This document shows, one piece after another, positions 8,976 to 46,257 of a stretch of DNA of 64,000 nt. The stretch is from positions 1 through 64,000 of IMG/VR virus record IMGVR_UViG_3300028654_000001. One strand, written 5' to 3'. The notes under the pieces are model-generated. The model was given only the letters and a program-made list of their open reading frames with translations. It was not told where the DNA came from and did no database searches. The translations under genes were made by a program, and so were the position numbers. How positions within the stretch are numbered: the stretch's first letter is position 1; each line of letters begins with the position of its first letter.

Positions 8976-8985
8976 AGCTATCTCC

Positions 8986-9883: not shown

Positions 9884-10112
9884 GATTCACGCTAAGATCA
9901 ACCTCACCTGTCACTGGATGCTCATACCCGACTATCTCTTTACATGTAGAACATATGAGTGTGCAATAAGGTCTAATCTCTAACCTAAGTAAAGACCACC
10001 TCCACCTCTGAACTTGTCCACGTAAGAATGGGTCAAAAGGAGAGGCACCGCAATGAGGACAGCTCTCGATTGGTGAGGGTTTGTCTAGAAGAACAGCGCA
10101 TTCAATCGGCAT
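9813..10112 (-). CDS. Small Zn-ribbon protein
   Basis: CPHCG...CSTC; ATG 10112 lies inside the tag region of the upstream gene. Confidence 0.55.
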   Translation of the reverse strand: MPIECAVLLDKPSPIESCPHCGASPFDPFLRGQVQRWRWSLLRLEIRPYCTLICSTCKEIVGYEHPVTGEVDLSVNPIRLLSRLGGKPPRNPQCSGRSD

Positions 10113-10578
10113 CGTCAAGAACCCTCTCGAATCGAGTTCGGGGTTCAACAATAATCCCGTCAGCGATCAACTCAGCTTTGAATGGAGATCCATAGGGGGT
10201 ACTGATAAGAAACTCCTTCAAGGCCTTCAAGATCCGTACATCATTGTCGATCAAGTTCCCTCGAACGAACACATCACCATTGCCCCTAAACCTCAATACC
10301 TCAATACCCTCGGTGACACAGAAGATGAGATCACCGGGGGCACTGAAAGCTTCTTGTGACTGAATTAGTAAACCCTCTGGAGCAGCTAGTGCCTCCACTT
10401 CCCAGGTATCTGCCAACAAGGCCTCTGCTGTTGGAAACCACCTCTCATTTCGAGAGGCTGAAGCTTCCCATATGAAGTCAGGAGGTTCACTCCGCGTGAG
10501 GCTTATCCAGAACTTATTCGGATCTTGCCGCATGCGGCGCCCAGCTTTTAGATATCCTAGAGCTTGAGAGAAGTTCAT
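10102..10578 (-). CDS. DUF2829 domain protein with C-terminal TRFERVL tag
   Basis: MNFSQALGYLKAGRRMR...WFPTAEALLADTWE; ends EPRTRFERVLDDAD. Confidence 0.8.
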   Translation of the reverse strand: MNFSQALGYLKAGRRMRQDPNKFWISLTRSEPPDFIWEASASRNERWFPTAEALLADTWEVEALAAPEGLLIQSQEAFSAPGDLIFCVTEGIEVLRFRGNGDVFVRGNLIDNDVRILKALKEFLISTPYGSPFKAELIADGIIVEPRTRFERVLDDAD

Positions 10579-13137: not shown

Positions 13138-14634
13138 ATGACGGTCGAGAGATTCTCCAATCAAGCCTCAACCACATTATTTACCTCTGTAGGTACTGGA
13201 GATCTTAGTATCTCAGTTCAGGCTACAACCAACTTCCCAGGCTCACCCGAGTTCAGGATCAGAATCGGTCAAGAACTCATGTTGGTGACCGGAGTCTCTG
13301 GTACCACTTGGACGGTAACCAGGGGGATTGAAGGAACAACCCCAGCTTCACATGCACCAGGTTCGATCGTCGTAGCGGTACTGACCTCGGGTGCACTTAC
13401 TGAGATGAGGGCTGAGATCGAAGCTGAGATCCCTTCGGGTACAATTCAGACCACTGATCCTCGCCTGGCCGATGATCGAACAGCTTCAGGAATCCGAACA
13501 GAAACAACCGTTGTAGCTATCTCTTCAGCAACAGCACCTACTCCTGGACAAGTCCTGACTGCTACGAGTGGAACTGCTGCTGACTGGAAGACCGTACCGA
13601 CACCACCAACCATCACTAGCCATGGTTCTGCAGCAGCCGGTGATGTTGTTCGACTCGTCTCTGCCGAAGTCCTTGCTCAGGCCCTGGCTGACTCTACTAG
13701 TCATGCTTCCTCGCTAATTGGTGTGTGGAATGGTGTTACTCCAGTTTCATTCTCTACTCAGCCTGTTGTAAATTTTGATTCTTCCCCAATCGTTGGAGCC
13801 CCATGTTATGTTTCAGCATCCGTTGCAGGAGCATTAACCTGCACAATCCCTGGCGTAGGCTACGTTAGTGTACCGCAGGACTTGTTGGTACTCGAAGATA
13901 AGTCTGTTGGGACAGCTTACGCAGCCAGGGTTGGGATCAATAAAGCTATGACAGGATCTCTGTCGGCTCGTGATGATTTCAAGCGCTATGCAGCACAACT
14001 AACTGGAATGAACCTAGCCAAGGCTGAGTTTTTTGGAAGTGACTTTACCGCAAGTGAACTACAAGATACTGGTACTGGTCCGATGCTCCCTCTTACATTT
14101 GGAACGTGGACTCAGCCGTGCCTACCCAGTTCTCAATATTCTAGTATTTATACGAACACAGCTGGAACAGTATTGTCCGTCAAAAAAGTTCTACCTGCTG
14201 CAAATCTAGCAACACAGAAGTGGGCAATGAGTGTGCGCTTTAGACAAGATGTTGCTGGCTACGAATTGATCCTTGCTCTTCGCCGAGCGAATGTCGATGG
14301 GGTAACTTTCACGGAGACTGCCCAAGTTGGCTTCAGTGCGTACGTAGGACATTCAACTCAACTCCTCTTTGGTGCTGGTAACTTTGACCCAGCCGACGGG
14401 GTATGGGATGTTAGGACTCCGACTGCTGCATACGGTACAATTGGCGTAACTTGGCATCAAGGCGTGATGTACTCGAAGGGTGATGGCAACATTTATTGTA
14501 ATTTAGATAATGCTGGGGTACTGTCTTTGCCGATAGCTCCATCGGCGGCTACAGGAATGGTGGAGCTCTGGTGCAATACCAACAGCCTGCAAATGGATTG
14601 GCTGTACCTGGTCAACGAGAGAGTGGACTACTAA
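13138..14634 (+). CDS. Tail fibre / receptor-binding protein paralogue 1
   Basis: N-terminal ~97 aa shared with 19699 and 61132 (ERFxNQAST...PEFRIRIGQELML...VTRGxEGTT); Thr/Ser/Gly-rich beta C-terminus. Confidence 0.75.
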   Translation: MTVERFSNQASTTLFTSVGTGDLSISVQATTNFPGSPEFRIRIGQELMLVTGVSGTTWTVTRGIEGTTPASHAPGSIVVAVLTSGALTEMRAEIEAEIPSGTIQTTDPRLADDRTASGIRTETTVVAISSATAPTPGQVLTATSGTAADWKTVPTPPTITSHGSAAAGDVVRLVSAEVLAQALADSTSHASSLIGVWNGVTPVSFSTQPVVNFDSSPIVGAPCYVSASVAGALTCTIPGVGYVSVPQDLLVLEDKSVGTAYAARVGINKAMTGSLSARDDFKRYAAQLTGMNLAKAEFFGSDFTASELQDTGTGPMLPLTFGTWTQPCLPSSQYSSIYTNTAGTVLSVKKVLPAANLATQKWAMSVRFRQDVAGYELILALRRANVDGVTFTETAQVGFSAYVGHSTQLLFGAGNFDPADGVWDVRTPTAAYGTIGVTWHQGVMYSKGDGNIYCNLDNAGVLSLPIAPSAATGMVELWCNTNSLQMDWLYLVNERVDY

Positions 14635-16077: not shown

Positions 16078-16080
16078 TAT

Positions 16081-16660: not shown

Positions 16661-17533
16661 TTACTCGGTGAGCAGATCTAGTTGGTTGGATCTTACACCG
16701 GGTGTCGGATCCAACCTCTTTTGAGCCAAAGAGATGGCAACCGGGTTCTGGTCAATACCCACCCAATCACGTCCTAGGTTCTGTGCTGCCACCAGTGTTG
16801 TACCAGATCCGCACATTGGATCAAGAATACGCCCGCCAGGATTGGTGCCCAGTCGAACAACCCTATCCAGCAACTTCAAAGGCTTTTGAGTTGGGTATCC
16901 GGTGGACTCCGAGTTCAAGGGAGTGTTGGCCTTCATCGCCGAGCAATCAGTCCAAACACTCCCCATCCGGCGCCCCTTGTCTTCGTAGTACCGATAGGCC
17001 TTCCCATTGATGACTCGTTCCCGGTACCGCCTCCCTGACTCGTCGACGGACTTGAAGTGCATGTTCCGGCTGGTCTCGGCATACGGCTCTCGAACCTCTG
17101 GGTCATCCGAGTTGTAGGTGAACTCATCCCCGCGGGAGTAGACCAGGATCGTTTGGTGGGTGACACTCAGGCCCTTCTTGCCTCGAGCCCCATTCCCGGG
17201 AACCCAAATGATCTCCCCTCGAAAGTTTGGCTTGCCAAAGATATCATCCGCCAGAAGTTTGGCTTCGTGAACCCCCCTGAAGTCCAAGTGGAGCCACAAG
17301 CTACCATTGGGGTTGAGGGCAGAGTGAAGAACCCTCAACCGTGGCTCTAGCATCGAGCAGAAGCCCTCGATACCACCCCAGGAGTCTTGGTACATCACAT
17401 CACCATCCACACGTGCCCCAAAGCCACTACGAGCCGAGTGTGAGTATCCAGTATTGAATGGGGGATCAACGTAAATGAGGTCGAACAGACCCACCTTTGG
17501 AACCAGATCCAGGCAGTCACCATGGTACAACAT
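16661..17533 (-). CDS. DNA adenine methyltransferase, beta class
   Basis: IYVDPPF, YPTQKP and DPMCGSGTT motifs. Confidence 0.93.
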   Translation of the reverse strand: MLYHGDCLDLVPKVGLFDLIYVDPPFNTGYSHSARSGFGARVDGDVMYQDSWGGIEGFCSMLEPRLRVLHSALNPNGSLWLHLDFRGVHEAKLLADDIFGKPNFRGEIIWVPGNGARGKKGLSVTHQTILVYSRGDEFTYNSDDPEVREPYAETSRNMHFKSVDESGRRYRERVINGKAYRYYEDKGRRMGSVWTDCSAMKANTPLNSESTGYPTQKPLKLLDRVVRLGTNPGGRILDPMCGSGTTLVAAQNLGRDWVGIDQNPVAISLAQKRLDPTPGVRSNQLDLLTE

Positions 17534-18024
17534 CAGATCACGTCTTTACGTTCGAATCGAGTCGGGACTTTGGCGTGCACTCGAGCCTCATATTCTTCCT
17601 TGTCATGAATCTGTCTTCGAGTCTGCACAGCTATCGCTGTAGTAGCCCCCTCCTCATCCCATAAGCTCTCGAGCTGGGAAACCTCCTCTTCTGGAGAGAG
17701 ATGGTTTGCACGAATAACTTCTCTATCCCAATCATTGAAGGAAACTGGTGGGGGTTGAGGAGCCCCTTTATTCAGTTCATTCACCAGCTGCATCCTACCC
17801 GCCAAACTTCTGAGTGAGTTCCAAAGTGGGTCATCTTGTTCGATAGTGGCTAGGAGTGATCGAAGGGCTATTACCCAAATTGTTTCAGTATTGGTACAAT
17901 CGGAACAAGCAAATCCAATAGTGCGATCCCTCGGATCATCACAACAGTACACAGAATGCCTGGTCTCCTGCACATGTTGGCGGGCTGCTTGGAACAACTC
18001 AGGGAAGTTTGGATACTCTGGCAC
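17533..18024 (-). CDS. CxxC protein with C-terminal PTRFER tag; paralogue of 18032..18454
   Basis: ARQHVQE..H...DD...IGFACSDC core; ends KVPTRFERKDVI. Confidence 0.75.
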   Translation of the reverse strand: MPEYPNFPELFQAARQHVQETRHSVYCCDDPRDRTIGFACSDCTNTETIWVIALRSLLATIEQDDPLWNSLRSLAGRMQLVNELNKGAPQPPPVSFNDWDREVIRANHLSPEEEVSQLESLWDEEGATTAIAVQTRRQIHDKEEYEARVHAKVPTRFERKDVI

Positions 18025-18031
18025 AGGTCAC

Positions 18032-18454
18032 CTAAAGATGCCCATTTTGAAAGAAAAGTAAAAGGGCTCGTCTACCCACCGGGTCTTTCAGGTAGTTCTT
18101 CAGTATCCCTGTTGCTTTATTGTCTGAATCAGAGGCCCTGGTATCTCTAGCCCTAATCTCCCAAGAAAACTCAGGTACGACCTGGATGTCTTCTCCCAGA
18201 GTGCCGCGCCTCTTGATGGTGCCCATGGTCGATGCATGAGCCTCACAACAAGTCTTGCAAGCGAATCCAAATGCAATCCCTACTACATCATCAGCATAAG
18301 TCAGAGTGTGCTCTGGGTTCTCCCGAACGTGACGGTAAGCACTCCTTGCCATTCTCTCGATATCTGAGTAGGGCTCCTTTAGCACGGGCTGGGGAAGTCG
18401 GTTGGGACGTATGTCAGCCCAGAATTCTTCAAGATCCTCAAGGGGCATAGACAC
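18032..18454 (-). CDS. CxxC protein with N-terminal acidic-Trp tag
   Basis: Begins EDLEEFWADIRP; core AYRHVRE..H...DD...FGFACKTC. Confidence 0.75.
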   Translation of the reverse strand: MSMPLEDLEEFWADIRPNRLPQPVLKEPYSDIERMARSAYRHVRENPEHTLTYADDVVGIAFGFACKTCCEAHASTMGTIKRRGTLGEDIQVVPEFSWEIRARDTRASDSDNKATGILKNYLKDPVGRRALLLFFQNGHL

Positions 18455-18716
18455 TCTCCAACTGGGTGCTCTCGGCTATTTGAGCAAAGATGGCGGCATC
18501 CTCGATTGCACAGATTTCCTCCTTGGCCTTCTTGCAGATGGAGTCTACGATACCCCGCTCGGCCATAGCGAAGAGAAGATTCTGGACCAAGAGTGCCCGC
18601 CGGGCCTCCGCCTTGGAGCCCATTTTAACGAGCTCACCGAATTCGTTCTCACGCCAACCCATCAACCTGAGTCTGGCCTTGACAGCTTTTCGGTTATCTC
18701 GATGTTTGCGACCCAT
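18438..18716 (-). CDS. Hypothetical protein
   Basis: CGGTGTA 9 nt upstream of ATG 18716. Confidence 0.6.
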   Translation of the reverse strand: MGRKHRDNRKAVKARLRLMGWRENEFGELVKMGSKAEARRALLVQNLLFAMAERGIVDSICKKAKEEICAIEDAAIFAQIAESTQLESVYAP

Positions 18717-18943
18717 GACCACTAATACACCGGCGGCTCGGAACCAGAGCGGCCCGAAGCCCGAAACACACTGTTACTACAGTGTTCACGTAGGTGTGTT
18801 GTACAGTGTACTAAGCACACAATTAATCAGAACATTCAATGACTGACTGGTCAATCGGATTGTATGGTCAGTAAATGGTTGCCACTGACGGCATTTCTGG
18901 AGTAGTGTGCTGAGAACCAAACCCCTCACGCGTAATATTGAAC

Positions 18944-19264
18944 ATGGCCGCGAGCAAAGCTATTGAAGAGCAAGCAGAACGCTGGGCCAGAAACTACCCT
19001 GACTCGAGAACCCGAATCGAGAAGGCCTTAAACCTCGTTGATGGTTGTACTTACATTGGGGAGGACACTTGGGAGGTCAAAGGATCTTCAGGGACCATCT
19101 ACTTTGTCGGCGCGGATCCAGTCAGAAGGGTCTCCACCTGCACGTGCCCGGATAGCATGAACGGCAACCGGTGTAAGCATCGAATTGCTTGTGCTCTTCT
19201 CTGGGCCACGCGAGGTGCAAATAAGAACTACCCTTTCACCGACGCGAACGGTGTAAGGTACTGA
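18944..19264 (+). CDS. SWIM zinc-finger protein
   Basis: STCTCPD...RCKHRIA. Confidence 0.85.
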   Translation: MAASKAIEEQAERWARNYPDSRTRIEKALNLVDGCTYIGEDTWEVKGSSGTIYFVGADPVRRVSTCTCPDSMNGNRCKHRIACALLWATRGANKNYPFTDANGVRY

Positions 19265-19268
19265 CATC

Positions 19269-19698: not shown

Positions 19699-22167
19699 GT
19701 GACAACTGAACGCTTCGTCAATCAAGCAAGTACAGCTTTGTCCTCATCGGTTGGAGCTGGTGACCTAACCTTCTCAGTCCAGAGTACTACCCATTTTCCG
19801 ACTCAACCTGAGTTCAGGATTCGAATTGGCCAAGAACTCATGTTGGTAACCGGAGTCTCGGGTACCTCTTGGACAGTGACCCGTGGGATCGAAGGGACTA
19901 CCGCGGTTTCACATGCACCAGGTTCGACCGTTGTAGCTGTTCTCACTGGTGGTGGACTCGATGAGATGCGAACGGAGATCGAAGCTGAGAACAAGACTCT
20001 CAACTATGTAGCCATCGATGGTAGTGTAGATGACATGCCAGCATTTACTGCTAAATTAGCTTCAGCAGCAAGTACTGGGTATCGAGTACAACTGAATGCC
20101 GGGAATACAATTCAGTTCAAGACACCCCCTGATGGTAGTGGTACTTATGCTCCACCAAATTCTACTCCAAACCTGAGTAGTGGGGAGTACATGACGTGTG
20201 CTCCAGGTACAAATCTCAGGTTTGACATGACCTATCGCTTCGGGTTGTATGGGAGAGCTAACCTGTCCCCTGGGAGCACCGTTGCTTCTCCTCCTGCAAC
20301 CAGGGCTGCCAACAACAACATAATTATAGTCAACCCCTGGGGTATAACTCCTGCAGTTGGGTACGTTATCTGGGTTGAGCAGTACATGGGAGTTACCCCG
20401 CAAGTGAGCGGGTGTACATATACTATCAAGGAACTTGGTGTTTCCACCATAGGGATCACTGACGTAACGGCCACCACTCTCTATGGGGGTGGCGGGACTC
20501 TCAACGGACTGACCCTCAAGCTCAACATTGATGGGGCTGGAGAGCAGACACTTACGTTATCCGGAGCTGGGAATACAACAACCCTTATCACTCTCATTGC
20601 AGCGATAGTTGTTAAGTGGCCTTCTTTGCTGCAAGTGGGAACTGGTGGTGCATCAGGGAACAACCTACTCATCTCCTCGAAGTCGATTGTGATCGGAGCT
20701 GGTACCGCAAACACAGCTCTAGGTCTCACCGCTGGTGTTCCAACCTATGTTGCTGTTCTGCTCGACCGATCTATTGTGTGGGAGCATTCAATTGGCGACT
20801 CAGTTACCAGTGCCCCCGACTACCCGAAGGACATCTTACTTGACTTCACAGGAGCTAATGTCAGTGGGTACGCAAACCAGCTTATTGAGTTCACGCAGGC
20901 CCAAAGGGCTACAGTCAATGGACTCAACTATCAACTAACGAATGACCAGATCCCGTTCCTCGGTGGGACTGCTACTCTTGCATTTGATGTAGCAAGTCGC
21001 GAATGCACACTATCGAACTCAACGATTGAATTTCCGAATAACCCCTACTACATAGGGAGCAATGGCTTTTACGGTCAGTCAAATGAAGGAACCTTGCTGT
21101 GGAATAATCGAATCCGCAATGCCAGAGCGCAGGGGTACTCCTTCATGGACTGTTATGCCTGCAACGCCATTGGGAACATAACCTCTGACTGTGATTGGGG
21201 TCAAGTTGCACAAGTATTTGTGGATGGTACTTTTGGTTGTTTAGATTGTGCATTCGTTGCATGTGCTGACATTGGAAGTGAAGTAGGGCAGTGGCTTTGG
21301 GGTTCTAAAAGAACAAAAACCCTTGGGTTATCGAGCACTAAGAACCCCCAGTACGGGCTTCTAGTTGATCGCAATAATGAGACCGCAACATTTACAAATT
21401 GCAGCTATACCAAGGCTCCTATTGGTATTTATATCGACGCTACTGCAACTGGAACCTCATTCACCCAGCTGAATACTGACGAGTGTCTTACTGGAATTGT
21501 TATTGCTGGGGCAGCTACCATATCACAGTGGCATCACCACAGCACTCGAACTGATCCTGGTGCAACAGGGGTGTTTGTATCTGGAGTCGGCACTAACATC
21601 ATCCGCGACATAGATCTGAAGATGAGTGGAAGTGGAATCGCGGTTGATGTTGGTACTACGGGTACTCTACTACTGGATGGTGGGAGAATAGAGACGGGAC
21701 CTACAGGTTATTGTTTGCGTGTACAGACAGCAGCTCGTATCAGACTGTCCAACATAACCTTTGCTGGTGGTGTTGGGATCTCTTGCTCAAGTGGTACTAT
21801 TGAGATAGGGCCAAACTGTGACTTTAGTGCTATAACAGAGAATCAACAATTTCTCGTGATTGCCCCGGGTTTGGTTACATTTCAGCAGACCGGTGGGGTT
21901 CTCTCGTATGCTGGCAGCAATCGATTCATACTACTAAGTGAGTGCTACAATACCACCATAGAGATATCGGCCTCAGCCTCAGCGAGTGGTGTTGGCCTAC
22001 CTGGGATACCTGGACTTCAGTTCACGGTAGTAAATAACAACACAAACCCGATGTTCGTTATCTCTAGGGCGGCAGGTGATACCGGAGTTACGATTGCCGG
22101 AGGCAAGACAGCTATTGTTAGGGTAGACTCGACTAACCACTGTAAGCGGGTAACCGCTGATCTATGA
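19699..22167 (+). CDS. Tail fibre / tailspike paralogue 2 with probable parallel beta-helix
   Basis: Shared N-terminal anchor; DGSVDDMPAF start of a pectin-lyase-like region followed by repetitive beta strands. Confidence 0.8.
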   Translation: MTTERFVNQASTALSSSVGAGDLTFSVQSTTHFPTQPEFRIRIGQELMLVTGVSGTSWTVTRGIEGTTAVSHAPGSTVVAVLTGGGLDEMRTEIEAENKTLNYVAIDGSVDDMPAFTAKLASAASTGYRVQLNAGNTIQFKTPPDGSGTYAPPNSTPNLSSGEYMTCAPGTNLRFDMTYRFGLYGRANLSPGSTVASPPATRAANNNIIIVNPWGITPAVGYVIWVEQYMGVTPQVSGCTYTIKELGVSTIGITDVTATTLYGGGGTLNGLTLKLNIDGAGEQTLTLSGAGNTTTLITLIAAIVVKWPSLLQVGTGGASGNNLLISSKSIVIGAGTANTALGLTAGVPTYVAVLLDRSIVWEHSIGDSVTSAPDYPKDILLDFTGANVSGYANQLIEFTQAQRATVNGLNYQLTNDQIPFLGGTATLAFDVASRECTLSNSTIEFPNNPYYIGSNGFYGQSNEGTLLWNNRIRNARAQGYSFMDCYACNAIGNITSDCDWGQVAQVFVDGTFGCLDCAFVACADIGSEVGQWLWGSKRTKTLGLSSTKNPQYGLLVDRNNETATFTNCSYTKAPIGIYIDATATGTSFTQLNTDECLTGIVIAGAATISQWHHHSTRTDPGATGVFVSGVGTNIIRDIDLKMSGSGIAVDVGTTGTLLLDGGRIETGPTGYCLRVQTAARIRLSNITFAGGVGISCSSGTIEIGPNCDFSAITENQQFLVIAPGLVTFQQTGGVLSYAGSNRFILLSECYNTTIEISASASASGVGLPGIPGLQFTVVNNNTNPMFVISRAAGDTGVTIAGGKTAIVRVDSTNHCKRVTADL

Positions 22168-29553: not shown

Positions 29554-30003
29554 GTGCTCCTTCGCATCTATCAACTCCAAGATGACACGGAACCTTGGTT
29601 CCAGAAATCTGCAAAGGTTCCTCTCATAATCATAGCCAAAACCATGAGTGGTACTTTCAGTATTTCGTTACCTGAGCGTGCCAAAGTCCCACGAGACTCT
29701 ATAGGAGTGACTCCCGGGGAGCCCCCTTATGAAACCGCCAAGAGATCTATTCTTGAAAAAGCTCGAGAGATTTGGTCTTGTGTCAAAAAGAAGGGGTATT
29801 CGGATACTGGGTACTTCTATGGTACCTTCAATCCAACACATCAGTTGTCAACTCAAAGTAAGGGTATTGTTGGTAGCATAGGAATTTGCTACTGCCCACA
29901 GGAAGCAACACCTGGCTTCACCAGTGTATCCATAGAGGATATCGAATTTGAGGAGGAACCAAAGTTAGTCCCTACCAGGTTCGAACGTGAGGACGTGATC
30001 TGA
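29554..30003 (+). CDS. Hypothetical protein with C-terminal tag
   Basis: Ends LVPTRFEREDVI. Confidence 0.7.
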   Translation: MLLRIYQLQDDTEPWFQKSAKVPLIIIAKTMSGTFSISLPERAKVPRDSIGVTPGEPPYETAKRSILEKAREIWSCVKKKGYSDTGYFYGTFNPTHQLSTQSKGIVGSIGICYCPQEATPGFTSVSIEDIEFEEEPKLVPTRFEREDVI

Positions 30004-30516
30004 GTGCCCGATGAAGAACTTCCCCAGGCGTACGTCAAAGAGGTCGACGGTCAACTTGTCTTGATTGACCCAGTTGCAGCCGGAGTCCTCCAAGCTATCA
30101 ATCAGTACAACGGTAGTAACTGCAGGCATACCCTAGAGATTCAGTTAGAACGGGTGGTTCACTTCACTCGCAGGATTAGAGAACTTAGGAAGAACCCTGC
30201 CGAGGTTACCATTGTACTCCTCAACGTGAATGACCCCTGGGGAGGCGCCATGGCAGAGATTCTGATGCCTGGCCATGACTGGAAACCCTATCGAGACCGA
30301 GGGGAGGTGCCCTTCGCTCGAGGGTTAGCCGGTCGCGAGGGGTTGCAGGGTGTCTTAGACGAAATAGACCCGAAAGAGGGAGCCAAGCTCCGTGAAGCGG
30401 GTCCAGTGGTTACCGTGGTCGTAATGGATCACGGAGTAGTAGAAGTCTTCAAGAAAGGTGACTGGGAGGACGACTACATTCCAACTCGTTTAGAGAGGGT
30501 TGCTGACTCAGAGTAA
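30004..30516 (+). CDS. Hypothetical protein with C-terminal tag
   Basis: Ends YIPTRLERVADSE. Confidence 0.75.
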   Translation: MPDEELPQAYVKEVDGQLVLIDPVAAGVLQAINQYNGSNCRHTLEIQLERVVHFTRRIRELRKNPAEVTIVLLNVNDPWGGAMAEILMPGHDWKPYRDRGEVPFARGLAGREGLQGVLDEIDPKEGAKLREAGPVVTVVVMDHGVVEVFKKGDWEDDYIPTRLERVADSE

Positions 30517-30528
30517 CTTGAGGTCTCA

Positions 30529-30747
30529 ATGAGAGTATTCTGTAACAACTGCGCGTGTTCCCCACCAATAGGACTATACACTTGCCTTAAGGAGCACCCT
30601 ATTGTCTACGCAGGGTTAATGGATCCGGAGACCAAGAAGTTCAATAGACTAATGATTAGTGCGGATAGTAATGAGTGCCCTGACTTCGTGGACATGGTGA
30701 ATAGGCCAACCAGGTTTGAGAGAATCCTCGACGATGACATCCTGTAA
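30529..30747 (+). CDS. Cys/His Zn-binding family member with tag
   Basis: CNNC...CLKEH...CPD...PTRFERILDDDIL. Confidence 0.75.
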   Translation: MRVFCNNCACSPPIGLYTCLKEHPIVYAGLMDPETKKFNRLMISADSNECPDFVDMVNRPTRFERILDDDIL

Positions 30748-30955
30748 CTACTGCGCCAACATCACTGGAAGAGGGGGAAAACCTAAGTGCCTCAAGGGTC
30801 ATCTCCTAAGGTCCACCCCAGTGTTTGTAGGGGAGTTAAGAACTGAGTTCCTGAACGTGCTAAGGTATGAGCCTGAGCCCTGTCCAGATATGGAATTCCG
30901 CCGTCTCTATCGACCAACACGCTTCGAAAAGATCCTCTATGACCCCGTCTTGTGA
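30734..30955 (+). CDS. Cys/His Zn-binding family member with tag
   Basis: MTSCNYC...CLKGH...CPD...PTRFEKIL; start moved to 30734. Confidence 0.75.
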   Translation: MTSCNYCANITGRGGKPKCLKGHLLRSTPVFVGELRTEFLNVLRYEPEPCPDMEFRRLYRPTRFEKILYDPVL

Positions 30956-31169
30956 TCGATGTACCAAGAAACCTGCACATCCATCGGCAAGAAAACTGGC
31001 AGTTCAGTTCAGGGTACCTACGGTTTGTTCTAGGGGGCACGCGTTAGTGACCAGTAAGTTTACTCATACCTTCCTTCGAGTCATTGGAGAAGATATTGCT
31101 CCCTGTCCAGATTTCGAATTTGATGCCCCAAGACTAACTAGGTTTGAACGAATACTTAGAGAAGAATGA
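30939..31169 (+). CDS. Cys/His Zn-binding family member with tag
   Basis: MTPSCDRC...CSRGH...CPD...LTRFERIL; start moved to 30939. Confidence 0.75.
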   Translation: MTPSCDRCTKKPAHPSARKLAVQFRVPTVCSRGHALVTSKFTHTFLRVIGEDIAPCPDFEFDAPRLTRFERILREE

Positions 31170-31411
31170 GCACCATCTGCAACGATTGTGAGTACTTCCA
31201 TAAGTTAGGATCTGACGTCCTTGGGAGACTAGCACCACGAAAGTGGATCTGCGTGATGGTCCATCCAATAACACCCCTTCAAAAAGTCAGTAGGTCCTCT
31301 GAGGATCCACCGAAGTTCACCTACAAGAACGGTGATACTTGCAAGGAATATCGGTACGGTGGCCCGAGGCCGTCTCGACTCGAGAGGGTGGTTAGGGTTG
31401 ATATTCTGTGA
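31166..31411 (+). CDS. Cys/His Zn-binding family member with tag
   Basis: CNDC...CVMVH...CKE...PSRLERVV. Confidence 0.75.
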   Translation: MSTICNDCEYFHKLGSDVLGRLAPRKWICVMVHPITPLQKVSRSSEDPPKFTYKNGDTCKEYRYGGPRPSRLERVVRVDIL

Positions 31412-31691
31412 TGATTGCCAGCACCACCCGCGCGTGTGGGGAGACTTCAACCCAGAGACAAGGGAGTGGTCTGGGATCTGTATGTGCGGGTGGAGAGTGC
31501 TAACCATCCTGTATATGGGCTCGGAACCCATCAAGAGAACTATAGCAAAGGGGAAGTTCACTAGTCCGACGGTGCGCCAAGACTATGATGACTGCAAGGA
31601 CTATGAGTTTGAGGGCCAGCGACTAACTCGGTTTGAAAGGATTCTGCTCCATAACTCATGCTTTCAAAAGTTCAGTGATTCGAACCACTGA
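31398..31691 (+). CDS. Cys Zn-binding family member with tag
   Basis: Probable TTG start; IFCDDC...CMCG...CKD...LTRFERIL. Confidence 0.7.
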   Translation: MIFCDDCQHHPRVWGDFNPETREWSGICMCGWRVLTILYMGSEPIKRTIAKGKFTSPTVRQDYDDCKDYEFEGQRLTRFERILLHNSCFQKFSDSNH

Positions 31692-31692
31692 A

Positions 31693-31734
31693 TAAGCTTG
31701 TACTTACTACAAGTTAGTAGTAAGTACAAGCTTA
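31693..31734. terminator. Perfect 18-bp inverted repeat between convergent arrays
   Basis: TAAGCTTGTACTTACTAC-AAGTTA-GTAGTAAGTACAAGCTTA. Confidence 0.7.
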
Positions 31735-31792
31735 AATGTAGCATAAAGTTCAAGAAAAAGTTGGTGTTACAGAGTCCGGTCAGTCGGTATTA

Positions 31793-31993
31793 CTAGATCT
31801 CTCGATCAGGACAATCGTCACAGTCCTTGCGAATCAAACCAGGATGCTTTAATTGAGGGACAGATCTCCCGTTCATCCTAAGAGCCCGTACCGAGTGGCC
31901 CTTGTCGCAAGTAATGACTAACTCGTTTCGATAGACTGGTTCAGCATTCTCTTGCGGTGGGAGGTTCTTGCATTCATCACAAAGTTTCAGCAT
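31793..31993 (-). CDS. Cys/His Zn-binding family member lacking the tag
   Basis: MLKLCDEC...CDKGH...CPDREI. Confidence 0.7.
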   Translation of the reverse strand: MLKLCDECKNLPPQENAEPVYRNELVITCDKGHSVRALRMNGRSVPQLKHPGLIRKDCDDCPDREI

Positions 31994-32204
31994 TGAGGAT
32001 CCTCTCAAATCTAGTTGGATGTTCCGTGATATCCCTCTCCAAGCAAACTGAGGCATTTCGAACCAGACGAAGCTTAACTTTATGTCCTCCCGGGTTGATG
32101 TTGGTATACTTTATGAGGTGCCCACGTGAGCACATAGCTTCCCAGTCGCCCACGGTAACATCAGGAGGAGTGGGGCGCCACTTGCAGTTAGAGCAAAAGA
32201 TCAT
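31977..32204 (-). CDS. Cys/His Zn-binding family member with tag
   Basis: CSNC...CSRGH...CLE...PTRFERIL. Confidence 0.75.
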   Translation of the reverse strand: MIFCSNCKWRPTPPDVTVGDWEAMCSRGHLIKYTNINPGGHKVKLRLVRNASVCLERDITEHPTRFERILNAETL

Positions 32205-32607
32205 TCAAAACCCTCTCGAATCTGGTTGGGTGTGTCCCGTTATCATAGTCTGAACAGAAGTCTGAATTCTCGCGAATCAAACTTTTTAGAGGAGCATCAT
32301 AGAAGTAGTCTTGGGCTGCCAATAACTGATGCCCTTTATCACAGGCTAGAGAACGATTTCTGTGGAGTCTTTCAGTCAAAGGCGGCGGGGCCCACTTACA
32401 ATCGGTACAGAGGATCATTCTTGCACCACCCCCTTCAATATCTGGGCAAGGTGCTTGCCCAACAGGGTGTAGCCCAACACCAGAGGAGTTCTTACTAGCC
32501 CAAATTCTATGACGTTTTGCACAATCACCACGCCACTGATCTATATCGTAATCATCTAACCTAGGCCTACATAGAACGTGTTTGCACCCATTACAGATGG
32601 TATACAT
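32188..32607 (-). CDS. Tandem fusion of two Cys/His units with tag
   Basis: MYTICNGC...CAKRH...CPD then MILCTDC...CDKGH...CSD...PTRFERVL; GGTGTA 11 nt before ATG 32607. Confidence 0.75.
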   Translation of the reverse strand: MYTICNGCKHVLCRPRLDDYDIDQWRGDCAKRHRIWASKNSSGVGLHPVGQAPCPDIEGGGARMILCTDCKWAPPPLTERLHRNRSLACDKGHQLLAAQDYFYDAPLKSLIRENSDFCSDYDNGTHPTRFERVLNDLLL

Positions 32608-32688
32608 CAATTTTAGGATACACCAGAACAATGCGAATCGGTGTAACTTACTGATGAACCTGACAATTCAACTAAGAAGTGCAGCCTA

Positions 32689-34551: not shown

Positions 34552-34812
34552 ATGGTCACCAACTGCCTCCATTGTATCCATTGTCCTCAGGTCGATGATT
34601 CTGAGGACTTACGCGGGGGTTGGGCTGTCTGCAAGAAAGGGTTTGATGTTCAATATTGGACTAGACCCAAAATACCATCCGGGGGATCTGGGTTAAAACA
34701 CATGTCTGTCGTAAGGGATGGATCCGACTGCCCACTTTATGATACTGGGGAGTATGAAGGCCCAAGACCCTCCCGCCTCGATAAAATCCTGCAAGATGGC
34801 TACCCTCTGTGA
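34552..34812 (+). CDS. Cys Zn-binding family member with tag
   Basis: MVTNCLHC...CKKG...CPLY...PSRLDKILQDGYPL; GGTGTA 9 nt upstream. Confidence 0.75.
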   Translation: MVTNCLHCIHCPQVDDSEDLRGGWAVCKKGFDVQYWTRPKIPSGGSGLKHMSVVRDGSDCPLYDTGEYEGPRPSRLDKILQDGYPL

Positions 34813-35018
34813 CCAGTGTCCCCCACAGGCCCCCCTTGATCGACGGTAGAGATCGATGCAATAAAGGTCATCCAGTTGTAGTGGTTAGAGTATACGAACC
34901 TGAAGGCTCAAAGTTTTCCAAGAGAGTTCTGCACCGAGATGACACAGATGAGGTCTGTTCTGATTTCCCACACGCGACAAGGTTTGAGAGAATCCTCCGA
35001 GATGGCTACCCTTTGTAG
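34809..35018 (+). CDS. Family member lacking the first CxxC, with tag
   Basis: CNKGH...CSD...ATRFERILRDGYPL. Confidence 0.7.
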   Translation: MTSVPHRPPLIDGRDRCNKGHPVVVVRVYEPEGSKFSKRVLHRDDTDEVCSDFPHATRFERILRDGYPL

Positions 35019-36242: not shown

Positions 36243-36740
36243 TCAGGGAGCAGGGTGAACTACCCTAAATCCTACATTCTCGCTGTAGTAACCGTTTGAT
36301 TCCCCAAACCATCGAACGGTTACCGTACCACGAACCGTAGAAAATCGGTAGAAAGTCCAAGTATAGCTTTCAGGTTGGTAGTCAAGATATGGATCTGGCT
36401 CAGAAGACAGTTCTTCAGCTTCGACTATCGGGTACCCGATTAGATCACTCAAGTCACCAATGATGTCTTCGATCTTCACGCTCTCACAGCAATCCTGCTG
36501 ATGATAGAGCTCGAAGCGAGTCCCATTTGTGGTAACGAACACCAGGGCCTCCTCACCAACACTTCCGATCACCTCCCTCAGGGTGATCCCAACCATGTCG
36601 CTAAGCTCCTCTGGGAGTCGATCTGGAGTTTGAAGATAGGAAGGGAGTTGAGCTCGCGGTGACTGCGGTTCAGATTCAATCTCTCTCTTAGGTCGCAAAC
36701 CCTCCCAGAATGATTCGATGTCGTCCAGGTCATTTGGCAT
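36243..36740 (-). CDS. Common phage domain (HxQDCCESV, DUF7448-like) with N-terminal acidic-Trp tag
   Basis: MPNDLDDIESFWEGLRP, then HQQDCCESVKIEDIIGDL...TWTFY...WFGESNGYYSE. Confidence 0.8.
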   Translation of the reverse strand: MPNDLDDIESFWEGLRPKREIESEPQSPRAQLPSYLQTPDRLPEELSDMVGITLREVIGSVGEEALVFVTTNGTRFELYHQQDCCESVKIEDIIGDLSDLIGYPIVEAEELSSEPDPYLDYQPESYTWTFYRFSTVRGTVTVRWFGESNGYYSENVGFRVVHPAP

Positions 36741-38926: not shown

Positions 38927-39139
38927 TCATACAAGGTCGTCTTTGAGAACTCTCTCTAATCGGGTAAGTCTCTGCCCAGTATCATGATCTGGGCAGGACT
39001 CATCATCGGCTCTCGCCGCTATCCCTTTCTCACCGGTCTTACGATTCACCGGTTGAATAAGAGTGTACCCACGATTACAGGCTAATCCAAGCTTGGTGTG
39101 CTCGGAGCTCCACTTGCACTCGCTACACGATAATCTCAC
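38927..39139 (-). CDS. Cys Zn-binding family member with tag
   Basis: GTG 39139; SCSEC...CNRG...CPD...LTRLERVL. Confidence 0.7.
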   Translation of the reverse strand: MRLSCSECKWSSEHTKLGLACNRGYTLIQPVNRKTGEKGIAARADDESCPDHDTGQRLTRLERVLKDDLV

Positions 39140-39500
39140 CCTGAAGGATCCTTTCAAATCGAGTTGGATACAGGGTCTCAGCCTCTTCCTCGCGCTCAAC
39201 AAAACCTGGACGGCAGTAGGATAACTGAAGGAAGCCACCCTCTGGCGTAGTATATATGATCTTCCAATCATACAAGTTAAGGTGATCTATATTTACAATC
39301 CACTCAAGGCAGTACTTCATCAGGAAGTAGGGATCTTCTCTGACCCAAGCCAACCTAGGCCACTTAACAACGGCGCTCGTAAGCTCATTCTTCAGAGCAT
39401 GAACGAACTCAGAGATCCCAGCCCCAAGCCCGTTAACCTTGAATAGAGGGTGACCCGAATCGTCTTCCGAGACTGCTACGAGAAGTTCCTTGTAACTCAC
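39123..39500 (-). CDS. Hypothetical protein with C-terminal tag
   Basis: Ends LYPTRFERILQGEIIV. Confidence 0.7.
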   Translation of the reverse strand: MSYKELLVAVSEDDSGHPLFKVNGLGAGISEFVHALKNELTSAVVKWPRLAWVREDPYFLMKYCLEWIVNIDHLNLYDWKIIYTTPEGGFLQLSYCRPGFVEREEEAETLYPTRFERILQGEIIV

Positions 39501-39745
39501 AGGACAACCCCACTCAAGATCCTATCAAACCTCGTGGGCCTAATATCTAGTTTGTCACCACAAATCTCGCTGTGGGTCATGCTGAGCACCCTTGGAACCT
39601 CTTGTGTTGCCTTATCGGGAATCCATATGTAGAACACATAATGCCCCTTGCAACAGGGGGCATACCCGGAGTAGTAAGTTGGGTCATCCTCCACGTGAAA
39701 CTTATGTGAACAATCCATGCAGTTGGTCAGAGCCATAGGCATCAC
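39497..39745 (-). CDS. Cys/His Zn-binding family member with tag
   Basis: CMDC...CCKGH...CGD...PTRFDRIL. Confidence 0.75.
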   Translation of the reverse strand: MMPMALTNCMDCSHKFHVEDDPTYYSGYAPCCKGHYVFYIWIPDKATQEVPRVLSMTHSEICGDKLDIRPTRFDRILSGVVL

Positions 39746-39795
39746 TCATGCACGAGATTATCACGAACCATGCTGATCCGGTGTATGGATCAACA

Positions 39796-40284
39796 ATGGC
39801 CGACGAGATCGAAGACTACTGGGAGGGGATTAGGCCCCAGAGACCAAATGACACCGTTCCAGCTCCGAAGATCGAGGAGTATCAAGAGCCATTTAGTTAC
39901 ACCCATGAAGACTTAGGAATTGGGCTCCGAGCTATTAGTCGTCTTCGAACGGAGTTGTCAACACGAGAAGATGCGGAACAGTTAGAAAGAACCCTGCGTC
40001 TGGGCCTTGGAATACCCGATAGTATCCCCTCTCTGACCCCCCTCAACTCTCTTCAATCTTGGATGGACACTTCTGAAGTCAGAGCGGCGCTTGGTCTACA
40101 ACAGTCACAGAATCAAGCCATAACGAACCTCATTAGGGCTTTCGAAGCCCTAGGGTATCGCTGTGAAGCGTCATTTAGCAACTTCAGGCTCTACGTGGCC
40201 CTACCTGCCATCACCCCAGATAATTGGTCAGCTCATCAATTAACTGAGGGTGGGGTTCAGTTGATCTTGAATTTACCAAGATAG
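39796..40284 (+). CDS. N-tagged protein with ALGYxCE domain
   Basis: MADEIEDYWEGIRP; CGGTGTA 10 nt upstream of ATG 39796. Confidence 0.75.
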   Translation: MADEIEDYWEGIRPQRPNDTVPAPKIEEYQEPFSYTHEDLGIGLRAISRLRTELSTREDAEQLERTLRLGLGIPDSIPSLTPLNSLQSWMDTSEVRAALGLQQSQNQAITNLIRAFEALGYRCEASFSNFRLYVALPAITPDNWSAHQLTEGGVQLILNLPR

Positions 40285-42242: not shown

Positions 42243-42716
42243 TTAATCCTCTGGGAATTCCACTACAATTCCCACTCCACCGTTCTGGGTAACCCGAGTT
42301 CCAATCCTGAAGTGGGGCAGTTCATTGGGGACTGGCTCTATAAGGAACCACACTGCTCGGTTCCCATTTGAGAGTCGCTCTTGTCCAACAGAGCCGGTGA
42401 TCCCAAGAGCCGCAAGAGATGACATGAGACGGTTGAGAGGGCTGTTTCCATTAGGCTCTTCCCTATTACTAAGACCATCCATGTAGGCGTGATTTCTAAT
42501 CCTCTGCTCCCTCGTAGATAGGGGTTCGAACTCAGCCCAAGTGTCAGGAGGCCTCCTCCGAAGAGAGCTGATCGTTCTGAGCCCAGTATCTGGATTATGC
42601 TGGTCAATGAGCCCATGCGGCGGACCAGGTCTCTCAGCAGGCTCAGTAGGGGACCTGGGAGACTCTCTACGAGGTCTGATCCCTTCCCAATAGGAGTCAA
42701 TGTCATCGTCAGGCAT
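42243..42716 (-). CDS. N-tagged hypothetical protein
   Basis: Begins MPDDDIDSYWEGIRP. Confidence 0.75.
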   Translation of the reverse strand: MPDDDIDSYWEGIRPRRESPRSPTEPAERPGPPHGLIDQHNPDTGLRTISSLRRRPPDTWAEFEPLSTREQRIRNHAYMDGLSNREEPNGNSPLNRLMSSLAALGITGSVGQERLSNGNRAVWFLIEPVPNELPHFRIGTRVTQNGGVGIVVEFPED

Positions 42717-43248
42717 GACGATTCCTAATGGTTAGGCGGAGCTCACCACCCACGCAAGGAGAGGCCCAGCTTGGTTCAGTGAGCCCATGGAACTGTATGC
42801 ACAGATTCTCCTCTTCAGTGACCCAGGTCTCGCACGAGTAACCCAGTGTCTGAAGGGCCAGCTGGAGATCCCGCAAGGGGACAGCGTCCTCAAGGTTGTG
42901 AAATGACTGTGGGTTTCTGTTATTTAGGATTCCATCTGCCAAAGCATGACCACCCTCGATGGAGTCAAGATCTGGAACGTGCATAGCACGAAAGTCATCG
43001 TAGGTCTGCTGATTCATGATCAGAGGCCTAACTGCAGGATGGGACTGGAATGCCTCCGAGGAGCGAAAAGTTCGTGCGGTTCTGGCGGTAGAGGCCGGGT
43101 AGAGGCCGAGCTCTTGAGCCCTCCTGAACTGTTCTTCTATTGTGGTTGGACTGACATCGTCCCCACTCAAGATCACCTCGAGAGGTTCACTAACCTCTCT
43201 ACGAGGTCGGCTCACATCCCAATAGGATTCGATGTCTTCAGCCATCAC
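42709..43248 (-). CDS. N-tagged protein with LGYxCE domain
   Basis: MAEDIESYWDVSRP...LQTLGYSCE. Confidence 0.75.
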   Translation of the reverse strand: MMAEDIESYWDVSRPRREVSEPLEVILSGDDVSPTTIEEQFRRAQELGLYPASTARTARTFRSSEAFQSHPAVRPLIMNQQTYDDFRAMHVPDLDSIEGGHALADGILNNRNPQSFHNLEDAVPLRDLQLALQTLGYSCETWVTEEENLCIQFHGLTEPSWASPCVGGELRLTIRNRHA

Positions 43249-44573: not shown

Positions 44574-44972
44574 CTACTCCATGGCCTTATCAATCCACGA
44601 GTAGTCCTCTTCTTGCTTAGGTTCAGGCCCTTCAAGAGTCAACAAGAGGTCTGACTCTACATCTTCTATCGACTTTGGCTTAAGGGACTCTTCAATCCAC
44701 GAGTAGTCATCATACTCATCCTCTGGAAGATCCTTTATGGTTAGGACCTGGATGGCTAACTTAACAGCTATATCAATAGGACTCAGGCCCTCAACTTCTG
44801 CCACTACACGAATATAGTCGAAAAAGTCGAAGTAGAACTCGCTACCCCACCTAAAGCCAGGTTTGTGACCAGCACTTGCTAACCTAACCAGAAGTCGACT
44901 AATCCACTTGGTAACGGTCTCGTTTCCGAACCTCTTAGCAAGTTGAGTCCTTGAAGTTCCTGGTCTAGTCAT
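44574..44972 (-). CDS. Hypothetical protein with duplicated DYSWI motif
   Basis: DDYSWIEES and EDYSWIDKA. Confidence 0.65.
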   Translation of the reverse strand: MTRPGTSRTQLAKRFGNETVTKWISRLLVRLASAGHKPGFRWGSEFYFDFFDYIRVVAEVEGLSPIDIAVKLAIQVLTIKDLPEDEYDDYSWIEESLKPKSIEDVESDLLLTLEGPEPKQEEDYSWIDKAME

Positions 44973-45165
44973 GTAGGATCCGTTCGAATCGAGTCAAGTG
45001 CACAAGTGGTCGGTACCGGGCACACTTGAAAACCTCAGCCGTGGAGGTCCAATGACGAAGACCCTCCAAGCAAACTAATTCCCACCACGGGCGATCCCCC
45101 GAGGGGAATGGCGACGGTGGGTTCACATTACTCAGGCATGATTCGCAGAGGTTGGAGTCAGTCAC
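44965..45165 (-). CDS. Cys Zn-binding family member with tag
   Basis: GTG 45165; CESC...CLEG...C...LTRFERILHD. Confidence 0.7.
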   Translation of the reverse strand: MTDSNLCESCLSNVNPPSPFPSGDRPWWELVCLEGLRHWTSTAEVFKCARYRPLVHLTRFERILHD

Positions 45166-45475
45166 CGGAGAGAATTCGTTCGAATCGAGTTGGGTAGGTC
45201 TCTTCGACTTTAGAGTATTCGTCCCGAAAGTCAACGCAGCGGCCATTCTCTACCGGAACTAAGTGGGCTCGCATCTCATGGTTGCCAACCCTCAGTGTGA
45301 TCTTGGCCACATGGTTAGCCTTGCAGGTAACTCGGTACATCTCAACCGCTGTCTTTGGGCGATGAGTTCTGAGAGTCGGATCAAGTGGCACCATAAACTC
45401 AGTTGATCTAGGAAAAACCCTATCCTTGTACAGATAGTCATCCGGGCAATGGTTGCAGTAGTTACAGATTGGCAT
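45158..45475 (-). CDS. Cys/His Zn-binding family member with tag
   Basis: CNYC...CKANH...CVD...PTRFERILSGD. Confidence 0.75.
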   Translation of the reverse strand: MPICNYCNHCPDDYLYKDRVFPRSTEFMVPLDPTLRTHRPKTAVEMYRVTCKANHVAKITLRVGNHEMRAHLVPVENGRCVDFRDEYSKVEETYPTRFERILSGD

Positions 45476-45748
45476 TCAGATCCAAGATTCAATTGCTGGC
45501 AGATCCTGGGTACTTGGCTCAGCCAGGCATACCCGCCCTGGAGGGATAAGCTTCCTCGCTTCCTCCAAGGTATTAGTCAGTTGGTAGTCTACATGCATAT
45601 ATACCTTCTCATTCAACGCTGTTGACTCACGCACTACATAGTTCTCAGGGAAGTCGAATGGGTGCTTGTAGATCGTGAGGACACTAAGACCTTTAGACAT
45701 ATCCAAGTCTTGAATTATATTGGTGCTTTCTAGAACTACTCTAGTCAT
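45476..45748 (-). CDS. Hypothetical phage protein
   Basis: TIYKHPFDFPENYVVR...TLEEARKLIP...IESWI. Confidence 0.7.
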   Translation of the reverse strand: MTRVVLESTNIIQDLDMSKGLSVLTIYKHPFDFPENYVVRESTALNEKVYMHVDYQLTNTLEEARKLIPPGRVCLAEPSTQDLPAIESWI

Positions 45749-46257
45749 TATGTCCTAGAGGAATCGTCATCGAGAACCCTCTCGAACCGAGTTGGCCGTG
45801 GTCCTCTGTAGGACGCTGGCTTGGCATCAACACCTATCGGACCATGTTCTCGAACCAACTCACCTTCCAAATCAACCTCTCGAATGACCACATATGGTAG
45901 AAGTCGACTCAGGTCCCCCAGACTATTCCTTGCAAGCTCACGAACGTTTTCCGTGAGAAGTGGACTATCAGGACTGAGCAGAGCGAACTCAATCGTGGGG
46001 TTTACCTGGCCGGCACTGGCCTCAATTCGTAAATCTTGAATAAGACTTACTTGGTTTCCATTCGAGTAGACCTTAGTATTCTGAACCGACAAGGGTCTAT
46101 CGCCCTCATCACTCTCGGGGTGTGTCCTTTCAGATGTAATCACCAATGCGTCTTCACTTAGAATGACCACTTGATGAAGTCGGTTTGGCCACGAGGCATC
46201 TGTTCTACGCTGTATAATGAATACCCTATCGAACTCCCCCACTTCGATCGTTGGCAT
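45748..46257 (-). CDS. Hypothetical protein with C-terminal tag
   Basis: Ends GPRPTRFERVLDDDSSRT. Confidence 0.7.
   Translation of the reverse strand: MPTIEVGEFDRVFIIQRRTDASWPNRLHQVVILSEDALVITSERTHPESDEGDRPLSVQNTKVYSNGNQVSLIQDLRIEASAGQVNPTIEFALLSPDSPLLTENVRELARNSLGDLSRLLPYVVIREVDLEGELVREHGPIGVDAKPASYRGPRPTRFERVLDDDSSRT

Follow-up and report, generated by a model that had tools for sequence, protein, structure and literature searches.

Why would a phage encode the same small domain twice in neighbouring genes, once with a conserved peptide at its front end and once with a different conserved peptide at its tail end? The two genes in question, ORF A (18032..18454, minus strand) and ORF B (17533..18024, minus strand), lie in a 64,000-nucleotide window, the whole stretch of DNA analysed here (positions 1 to 64,000 of IMG/VR record IMGVR_UViG_3300028654_000001). 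The record is a 512,571-bp rhizosphere megaphage genome estimated to be 100% complete, with an HK97-type capsid gene and tail-fibre PHROG hits. A first-pass annotation had proposed that A and B share one core, that A carries only an N-terminal tag and B only a C-terminal tag, and that the tags are modular and exchangeable, either routing one activity to two destinations, serving as alternative ligands of one hub, or binding each other. The observation is confirmed and can be extended, whereas the interpretation is only partly supported.

Both ORFs are real, translationally coupled genes. A is 140 aa in the ORF listing, but its orthologues begin at the ATG at 18448, which is likely the true start and gives 138 aa. 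B is 163 aa. A 94-aa basic protein (18438..18722, minus) without a family match overlaps the start of A, and the order 94-aa protein, A, B is conserved in L002 and L003, two related metagenomic phage contigs. Downstream, an untagged N6/N4 DNA methyltransferase (16661..17533, minus) belongs to the same operon, its start codon overlapping the stop codon of B by 1 nt (TGATG). No tRNAs were found in the window. No near relative was found by DNA among 50,697 phage records, and LR745208.1 shares only a capsid-like piece, with neither the tag nor the core.

Significant alignment of the two cores had been set beforehand as one condition on which the claim would stand, and it is fulfilled. BLASTP of A against B gives 29% identity over 59 aa (E 7e-6), and hhalign of the two orthologue families gives E 1.1e-5, or E 2.5e-7 for the N-terminal half alone. 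Against a 44-sequence profile of the family defined in this work, A scores E 1.3e-13 by hhalign (probability 98%, 86 aligned columns) and E 5.8e-11 by HMM, while B scores E 1.8e-34. The profile alignment covers every core element listed in the first-pass annotation, including W-x-I and the GR motif, although the spacing is L-x4-GR rather than L-x3-GR. The structure predictions requested alongside the alignment were less even: AlphaFold2 models the core of B confidently but gives only a poor model of A (pLDDT 45.5).

The shared domain is a previously undescribed alpha/beta domain about 90 residues long. In B it occupies residues 1-90 (17755..18024, minus), modelled as a helix, three strands, then helices with pLDDT 82-92, and in A residues 29-140 (18035..18370, minus). 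H, H, D, GFAC and C are invariant across 16 sequences of both families. The putative metal ligands are H42, H49, C66 and C69 in A (18248..18331) and H17, H23, C40 and C43 in B (17896..17976), which makes a structural zinc site likely. These residues are at least 70% conserved across the wider family, but some members lack the Cys pair, and neither ligand geometry nor metal content was examined, so that zinc binding is inferred from conserved residues only and the evidence does not decide it. A conserved His/His/Cys-x2-Cys pattern with the Cys pair at a beta-turn is shared with the small zinc-knuckle and zinc-ribbon-like domains of phage accessory proteins. However, neither A nor B matches a Pfam, PHROG or NCBIfam family at E<=0.1, and a sequence search of the PDB returned nothing. 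Foldseek searches of the PDB, AFDB clusters and the ESM Atlas, and a language-model atlas search, gave no significant match. The best Foldseek hits were sub-threshold alpha-beta-beta-beta-alpha look-alikes such as SRP9/14 (E 0.07-0.2; TM-score about 0.3 by query and 0.5 by hit), too weak to settle whether the fold is of that kind.

Among 1.84 billion proteins, 51 representative metagenomic clusters contain the domain at E<=1e-3. In most of them it lies at the N-terminus as in B, and about half carry variants of the C-terminal tag. B therefore shows the typical architecture of the family, with the core domain followed by an acidic linker, an LExLW motif, a long helix and the C-tag, and A is the derived copy. 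A consists of the N-tag, a Pro-rich linker and the core domain, with nothing following the domain, and contains a 21-22 residue insertion after C-x2-C (residues 73-93; 18176..18238, minus) that is absent from B and from the wider family. In the favoured account, A lost the entire C-terminal arm, gained the insertion and acquired the N-terminal tag with its linker. One detail of the first-pass annotation does not hold, namely that the internal QLESLWDEE of B is a degenerate N-tag. This segment has no N-tag HMM hit at E<50. Its Q-L-E-S-L-W motif (residues 117-122; 17659..17676, minus) is invariant among B orthologues and recurs in distant family members as a conserved feature of the B-type architecture, yet among C-tagged proteins it occurs in only 1 of 50.

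The tag of A, DLEEFWADIRP, lies at residues 7-17 (18404..18436) within a tag-plus-linker segment (residues 3-23; 18386..18448, minus), and that of B, PTRFERKDVI, is its exact C-terminus (17536..17565, minus). Both are far beyond chance in the phage genome: 59 ORFs end in (P)TRFER… against 1.5 expected, 16 begin with D-[IL]-E-x-[FY]-W-x-x-[ILV]-R-P against 0.28 expected, and none has both. About 20 weaker copies are detected by HMM. The tags thus mark about 75-95 otherwise unrelated small proteins, or roughly 10-13% of the genes of this phage, which encodes about 743 proteins. This suggests an undescribed protein-addressing system whose destination is still unknown.

Within the window, further C-tagged ORFs are found at 10102..10578 (minus, RTRFERVL…), 29554..30003 (plus, PTRFEREDVI at the free carboxyl end, the same -VI flavour as B) and 30004..30516 (plus, PTRLERV…). 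These are followed by three small Cys-containing ORFs at 30529..30747 (plus, PTRFERIL…), 30716..30955 (plus, PTRFEKIL…) and 30867..31169 (plus, LTRFERIL…), and by 31332..31691 (plus, LTRFERIL…), which has the longest tail at 16 aa. Others are the small ORF 31977..32204 (minus, PTRFERIL…), 32188..32631 (minus, PTRFERVL…), the small ORF 34809..35018 (plus, ATRFERIL…), 38927..39271 (minus, LTRLERVL…), 39123..39500 (minus, PTRFERIL…), 39497..39745 (minus, PTRFDRIL…), 44965..45246 (minus, LTRFERIL…), 45158..45475 (minus, PTRFERIL…) and 45748..46257 (minus, PTRFERVL…). N-tagged ORFs occur at 36243..36740 (minus, DIESFWEGLRP), whose body is DUF7448 / phrog_2650, at 39748..40284 (plus, EIEDYWEGIRP), a divergent neighbour of the C-tagged 39497..39745 whose true start is probably the internal Met just before the tag, and at 42243..42716 (minus, DIDSYWEGIRP), where the next ORF, 42709..43248, carries a weaker copy of the tag. 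Two more are 53548..54411 (plus, DIESYWEGLRP, 287 aa) and 60671..61015 (minus, DLEGYWETIRP).

Are these termini merely leftovers of common descent, or of recombination between gene cassettes at conserved DNA ends? Many tagged genes do sit in tandem arrays of small genes, some of which are paralogues. However, codons within the tags vary synonymously between copies and between orthologues while the peptides are invariant, which also rules out a DNA repeat. The tags are the most conserved segments of each family, with 98.8% column identity for the N-tag segment of A (against 81-86% elsewhere in the A family) and 91.9% for the C-tag of B. Their terminal position is strict, with the C-tag 4-16 residues from the stop. 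A functionless origin is therefore considered highly improbable.

The modularity of the tags is supported. With tags stripped, the 75 strictly tagged proteins fall into 60 BLAST clusters, and A/B is the only cluster that mixes N- and C-tagged members. Within this one genome, the same domain occurs with the -VI C-tag (B), the -IL C-tag (246657..247118), the N-tag (A, and marginally 132128..132496) and no tag (469655..470080). A/B is thus indeed the best internal evidence for modular tags, as had been claimed. Exchangeability, in contrast, holds only over long evolutionary time, as the tag state is stable among orthologues in related contigs (44 C to C, 6 N to N and no N to C switch).

The suggestion that the two tags bind each other, so that A and B would form one of many N/C pairs, is not supported and appears very unlikely. 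A and B are adjacent, and 5 of 13 N-tagged genes have a C-tagged neighbour, but this is not significant against about 2.5 expected (p 0.07-0.10). The tags number 59 to 16 rather than 1:1, and distant relatives carry C-tag variants with no sign of an N-tag. Co-folding, which had been proposed as a test of this idea, was run for A with B and scored 0.01, a value that counts neither for nor against binding. The notion of alternative ligands of one hub has no sequence support either: although both tags have R-P-x-R next to the body, which could hint at mirror-image peptides, their profiles are not similar in forward (p 0.58) or reversed (p 0.19) order. Routing to two destinations is still open and was not tested.

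The tags most likely act, by inference, as docking or address peptides read by one or two shared receptors that co-evolve with them, so that A and B would deliver the same domain through two different addresses. Tag variants are specific to each lineage, as expected under such co-evolution; for example, four consecutive genes in L039 end in xRYxR[PE][WP][VL][IV]. The leading guess for the destination of at least the C-tag is the assembling capsid, with tagged proteins packaged and injected along with the DNA. Two C-tagged proteins contain fragments of the phage's own major capsid protein (E 4e-16, 8e-9 and 2e-7), another hits virion-structural and head-decoration PHROGs, and a conventional portal / protease / capsid module is present, at about 400-413 kb, which also includes 210-aa and 479-aa proteins of unknown function. 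Yet this destination rests on three of about 75 tagged proteins, the capsid-protein fragments could have another meaning, for example as decoys, and there is no experimental or structural evidence for any receptor. As a whole, this explanation is held to be about as likely as not. The paralogy, the domain family, and the reality, modularity, constraint and lineage-specific drift of the tags are established by the sequence analysis, while zinc binding, the docking function and the destination are inferences drawn from it.

[quoted passage not shown] The tags described here likewise sit on unrelated bodies. The T4 sequence, however, is exclusively N-terminal, marks a handful of proteins and is removed by the prohead protease, whereas here there are two unrelated tags on many more proteins and the commoner one is C-terminal. 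A head maturation protease gene exists (phrog_18299), but no cleavage motif has been shown, cleavage was not assessed, and no proteomic data were at hand for the virions of this uncultured phage. Neither virion location nor cleavage has been shown for the tagged proteins, and the only indirect hints of a virion location are the capsid-fragment bodies and the virion-protein PHROG hit. Encapsulin cargo-loading peptides and bacterial microcompartment encapsulation peptides are similar in being short terminal peptides on flexible linkers, at the N- or C-terminus of unrelated cargo, that dock to a shell, and encapsulin shells have the same HK97 fold as the capsid protein of this phage. The linker criterion is satisfied here, as A has a Pro-rich linker after its N-tag and the tags are modelled with low confidence (A residues 1-29 and B residues 156-163, pLDDT below 50). 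No sequence resemblance to these peptides was established, binding to the shell protein was not tested, and the number of cargo proteins is far larger here.

A less likely alternative is docking onto a cytoplasmic hub, either a host machine or a phage factor such as polymerase, replisome, ribosome, chaperone or a membrane complex, for which many small accessory proteins would compete or to which they would be recruited during host takeover. All tags lie in the small-gene half of the genome (0-290 kb) and none in the large-gene half encoding structural and replication functions. The tagged bodies are very diverse, including a RecA-like P-loop protein, membrane-type proteins, small Cys-rich proteins and the domain described here, and lineage-specific drift also fits co-evolution with such a partner. 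Two C-tagged proteins begin with membrane-type hydrophobic segments, which fits ejection proteins but equally fits cytoplasmic hubs. However, about 75-95 different ligands would be unusually many for one cytoplasmic site, no candidate hub was identified, and the capsid-fragment proteins point elsewhere.

The tags could also be degrons that hand proteins to a protease for timed removal, though this is thought unlikely. They sit at the extreme termini on flexible linkers and never both on one protein, ClpX-type degrons also occur at either end, and the -VI flavour ends in two hydrophobic residues at the free carboxyl end. In contrast to the mostly non-polar C-terminal degrons, however, the motifs are charged and highly specific, with T and R invariant in 59 of 59 C-tags, and Pfam searches detected no Clp, Lon or trypsin-like protease encoded by the phage (searches for S78 proteases and Terminase_6N were likewise negative). 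Drift of the tag variants between phage lineages is harder to reconcile with a conserved host protease, although the hosts are unknown.

A more far-reaching possibility, compatible with the evidence but doubtful at present, is that large soil phages run their own protein-addressing system. Two unrelated terminal peptides, read by phage-encoded receptors that co-evolve with them, would sort about 90 accessory proteins, among them membrane-type proteins, capsid-protein fragments and a RecA-like ATPase, to defined destinations such as the capsid interior for co-injection and a second site in the infected cell. The A/B pair would then be one domain deliberately sent to both.

Most genes of huge phages are unannotatable orphans, and here about a tenth of them carry one of two terminal peptide tags. 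Literature searches for the motif or for comparable systems returned no description, in the libraries searched, of the tags or of the domain, which defines a new small family, probably zinc-binding. The A/B pair presents the same domain under both addresses, a natural control for tag swaps. If the tags are address labels, they provide a sequence-only way to pick out a functional class of such orphans, possibly the proteins injected with the DNA, and would also offer portable tags for loading foreign proteins into a very large capsid or compartment.

Two adjacent minus-strand genes, ORF A (18032..18454, 140 aa as listed) and ORF B (17533..18024, 163 aa), exist as described in the first-pass annotation, although orthologues of A begin at the ATG at 18448, so that A is probably 138 aa. 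The genes are tightly packed. A conserved 94-aa gene (18438..18722) overlaps the start of A, B starts 7 nt after the stop of A, and the stop of B overlaps the start of an N6/N4 DNA methyltransferase gene by one base. Divergently upstream of this operon lies a 108-aa protein (18938..19264, plus strand) with a SWIM zinc-finger hit (E 6e-4, just above the Pfam cut-off), and the operon is flanked by two plus-strand tail-fibre-like genes (13138..14634 and 19699..22167) that share a nearly identical N-terminal region of about 100 residues but have different C-terminal parts, the second with a beta-helix.

The order 94-aa gene, A, B is kept in a 297-kb JGI contig (L002) and a 303-kb ENA contig (L003), and a B orthologue lies on a 34-kb IMG/VR contig (L018). 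The relatives nevertheless differ around the pair. In L002, a further N-tagged gene with an unrelated body is inserted just upstream of the A orthologue, and a 360-aa Cys-rich protein with a weak DUF723 hit takes the place of the methyltransferase (L002:5163-5585 and L002:7100-8182). In L003, a 398-aa protein with a long hydrophobic C-terminal part (L003:6978-8174) precedes the methyltransferase.

The pair lies in the first 64 kb of a single 512,571-bp IMG/VR virus record rated 100% complete. The "terminal repeat" of this record is an exact 127-bp overlap that is probably a product of assembly circularisation, so the position of the window at the left end carries no meaning. The genome encodes tail-fibre-like proteins and an HK97-type capsid protein, and near 400-413 kb it contains a standard portal, maturation protease and capsid module. 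Directly next to the capsid gene are two homing-endonuclease-like genes with LAGLIDADG and HNH PHROG hits (6113-8416 and 8520-9485 of the genome segment L044), the larger of which is fused to a DNA methyltransferase-like region. About 743 genes were called, in a two-part layout: from 0 to about 240 kb the genes are small (median about 100-170 aa) and on both strands, whereas from about 240 to 460 kb they are large and almost all on the minus strand. The locus is found in several rhizosphere and soil metagenomes, but no record in a collection of 50,697 phages resembles it at the DNA level.

A and B share a core domain. Failure of the two cores to align significantly had been named in advance as grounds for rejecting their relationship, yet BLASTP of A against B gives 29% identity over 59 residues (E 7e-6). 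Each protein has 8-9 metagenomic orthologues, and the two family profiles align at E 1.1e-5, or E 2.5e-7 for the N-terminal halves alone. His, His, Asp, Gly-Phe-Ala-Cys and Cys are invariant across all 16 sequences. A profile of this core found 51 representative clusters at E<=1e-3 among 1.84 billion proteins. Against a 44-sequence alignment of that family, A aligns over 86 columns (residues 29-140) at E 1.3e-13 and probability 98%, carrying a 21-22 residue insertion after C-x2-C, and its W-x-I and GR motifs fall into register. The whole core proposed in the first-pass annotation is therefore confirmed, although the C-terminal motifs on their own were not significant in a direct A-to-B comparison (E about 0.1).

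Structure prediction, also suggested beforehand as a check on the two cores, gave a B model that is confident over residues 1-90, with a helix, three strands and further helices, while the A model is poor. None of the structure or family libraries searched gives a significant match. The conserved His/His/Cys/Cys is read here as a structural zinc site, an inference tempered by family members that lack the Cys pair. The C-terminal part of the phage's own capsid protein (L044:9574-10440, genome 403571..404440, minus strand) contains, at residues 249-268, DDPKARTIGFSC, close to the core-domain motif DDPxxRTIGF[AS]C, but the family HMM hit is weak (domain E 0.0065) and may be due to chance.

Most members of the core family resemble B, with the domain at the very N-terminus followed by an acidic linker containing an [LI]-E-x-[LI]-W motif, a helix and a C-terminal tag variant. 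Only the A family has the N-terminal tag (N-tag), so B keeps the ancestral layout and A is derived. The internal motif of B, which had been taken for a degenerate N-tag, belongs to this ancestral arm. It does not score as an N-tag and is unique among the C-tagged proteins of this phage.

Both tags recur across the genome. In total, 59 ORFs have TR[FL][ED][RK] within 17 residues of the stop (1.5 expected from shuffles) and 16 have [FYW]-W-x-x-[ILVM]-R-P near the start (0.28 expected), while none has both. HMMs add about ten weaker copies of each, a few of them internal. The C-terminal tag (C-tag) comes in two flavours: PTRFER-[IV]L followed by a short acidic tail, and PTRFER-[ED][DP]-VI ending exactly at the C-terminus, as in B. 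Codons differ synonymously between copies and between orthologues, and the tags are the most conserved part of each family, with 98.8% column identity in A and 91.9% in B against 54-86% for the rest, indicating constraint at the peptide level. All strict tags lie between about 10 and 290 kb, or close to the arbitrary end of the record, and none lies in the large-gene half. A dense array of small C-tagged genes on both strands occupies 29554..32631, many with a Cys-x-Asp-[Phe/Tyr] motif about ten residues before the tag. Proteins with the -IL C-tag are richer in Cys than untagged ones (2.5% against 1.4%).

The tags are modular, as the first-pass annotation had proposed. With tags removed, the 75 strictly tagged proteins form 60 BLAST clusters, and A/B is the only cluster holding both tag types. 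The family HMM finds the domain in this genome in five contexts: with the -VI C-tag (B), with an internal -IL C-tag (246657..247118), with the N-tag (A), marginally with the N-tag (132128..132496, E 4.5e-4), and with no tag (469655..470080). Among orthologues in 212 kb of related contigs the tag state is stable, with 44 C to C and 6 N to N. Three apparent losses are degenerate N-tags, and there are no N/C switches. The tags are therefore portable over long evolutionary time but fixed over short time.

In IMG/VR, the exact tag sequences occur only in a few contigs from four related samples, where both tag types occur together. Distant members of the core family carry drifted C-tags. In the distant 4.7-kb ENA contig L039 (1182-2645), four consecutive genes end in variants of RYxRPWVI, namely SRYRRPWVI, SRYQREPVI, SRYKRPWVI and DRYHRPWLV. 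Three of these carry the core domain in tandem and one has a different body, revealing a drifted version of the same tag system in another lineage. L041 has both flavours. Such lineage-specific drift is what one expects of a peptide that co-evolves with a receptor.

Few tagged proteins are identifiable. They include a RecA/UvsX-like P-loop protein and a DUF7448 protein. Two adjacent proteins with the -VI C-tag (14805-15554 and 15554-16600 of the genome segment L010, genome 198805..200603) begin with hydrophobic, membrane-type segments, and the second gives partial hits to virion-structural and head-decoration PHROGs. Two further C-tagged proteins on the plus strand (16848-17594 and 18714-19751 of the genome segment L011, genome 220848..221597 and 222714..223754) contain fragments of the phage's own major capsid protein (E 4e-16, 8e-9 and 2e-7). 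The first holds the capsid N-terminal 62 residues at 48% identity, and the second holds capsid residues 245-289 followed by 85-137, in permuted order. These could be capsid-associated proteins or decoys.

The closest described case is the T4 capsid targeting sequence, the only conserved part of a highly diverse set of internal proteins (PMC3012670). The tags are therefore suggested to be docking peptides for shared receptors, with capsid loading as the leading but weakly supported destination and a cytoplasmic hub nearly as likely. None of this is demonstrated directly: the two genes, their shared core, the tags and their modularity are established by the sequence analysis, whereas the zinc site, the docking role and its destination are inferred. 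The alternative that the tags are degrons is weakened by the absence of Clp, Lon or trypsin-like proteases detectable by Pfam in the phage and by the charged, highly specific motif. The proposal that the two tags bind each other has no support, as the counts are 59 to 16 and the adjacency of N- and C-tagged genes is not significant. Co-folding, which had been put forward as a test of this pairing, was run on A with B and returned no answer, which counts as evidence neither way. The possibility that the two tags are mirror images binding one groove was also considered, but failed a permutation test.

The observation of adjacent paralogues with one core and opposite tags thus holds. Its interpretation is supported in part, since the tags are modular and A/B is the unique cross-tag family, but mutual binding is unsupported. 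Although their function was not shown here, the tags constitute a real and apparently undescribed pair of proteome-wide terminal tags in a megaphage, together with a new small domain family.
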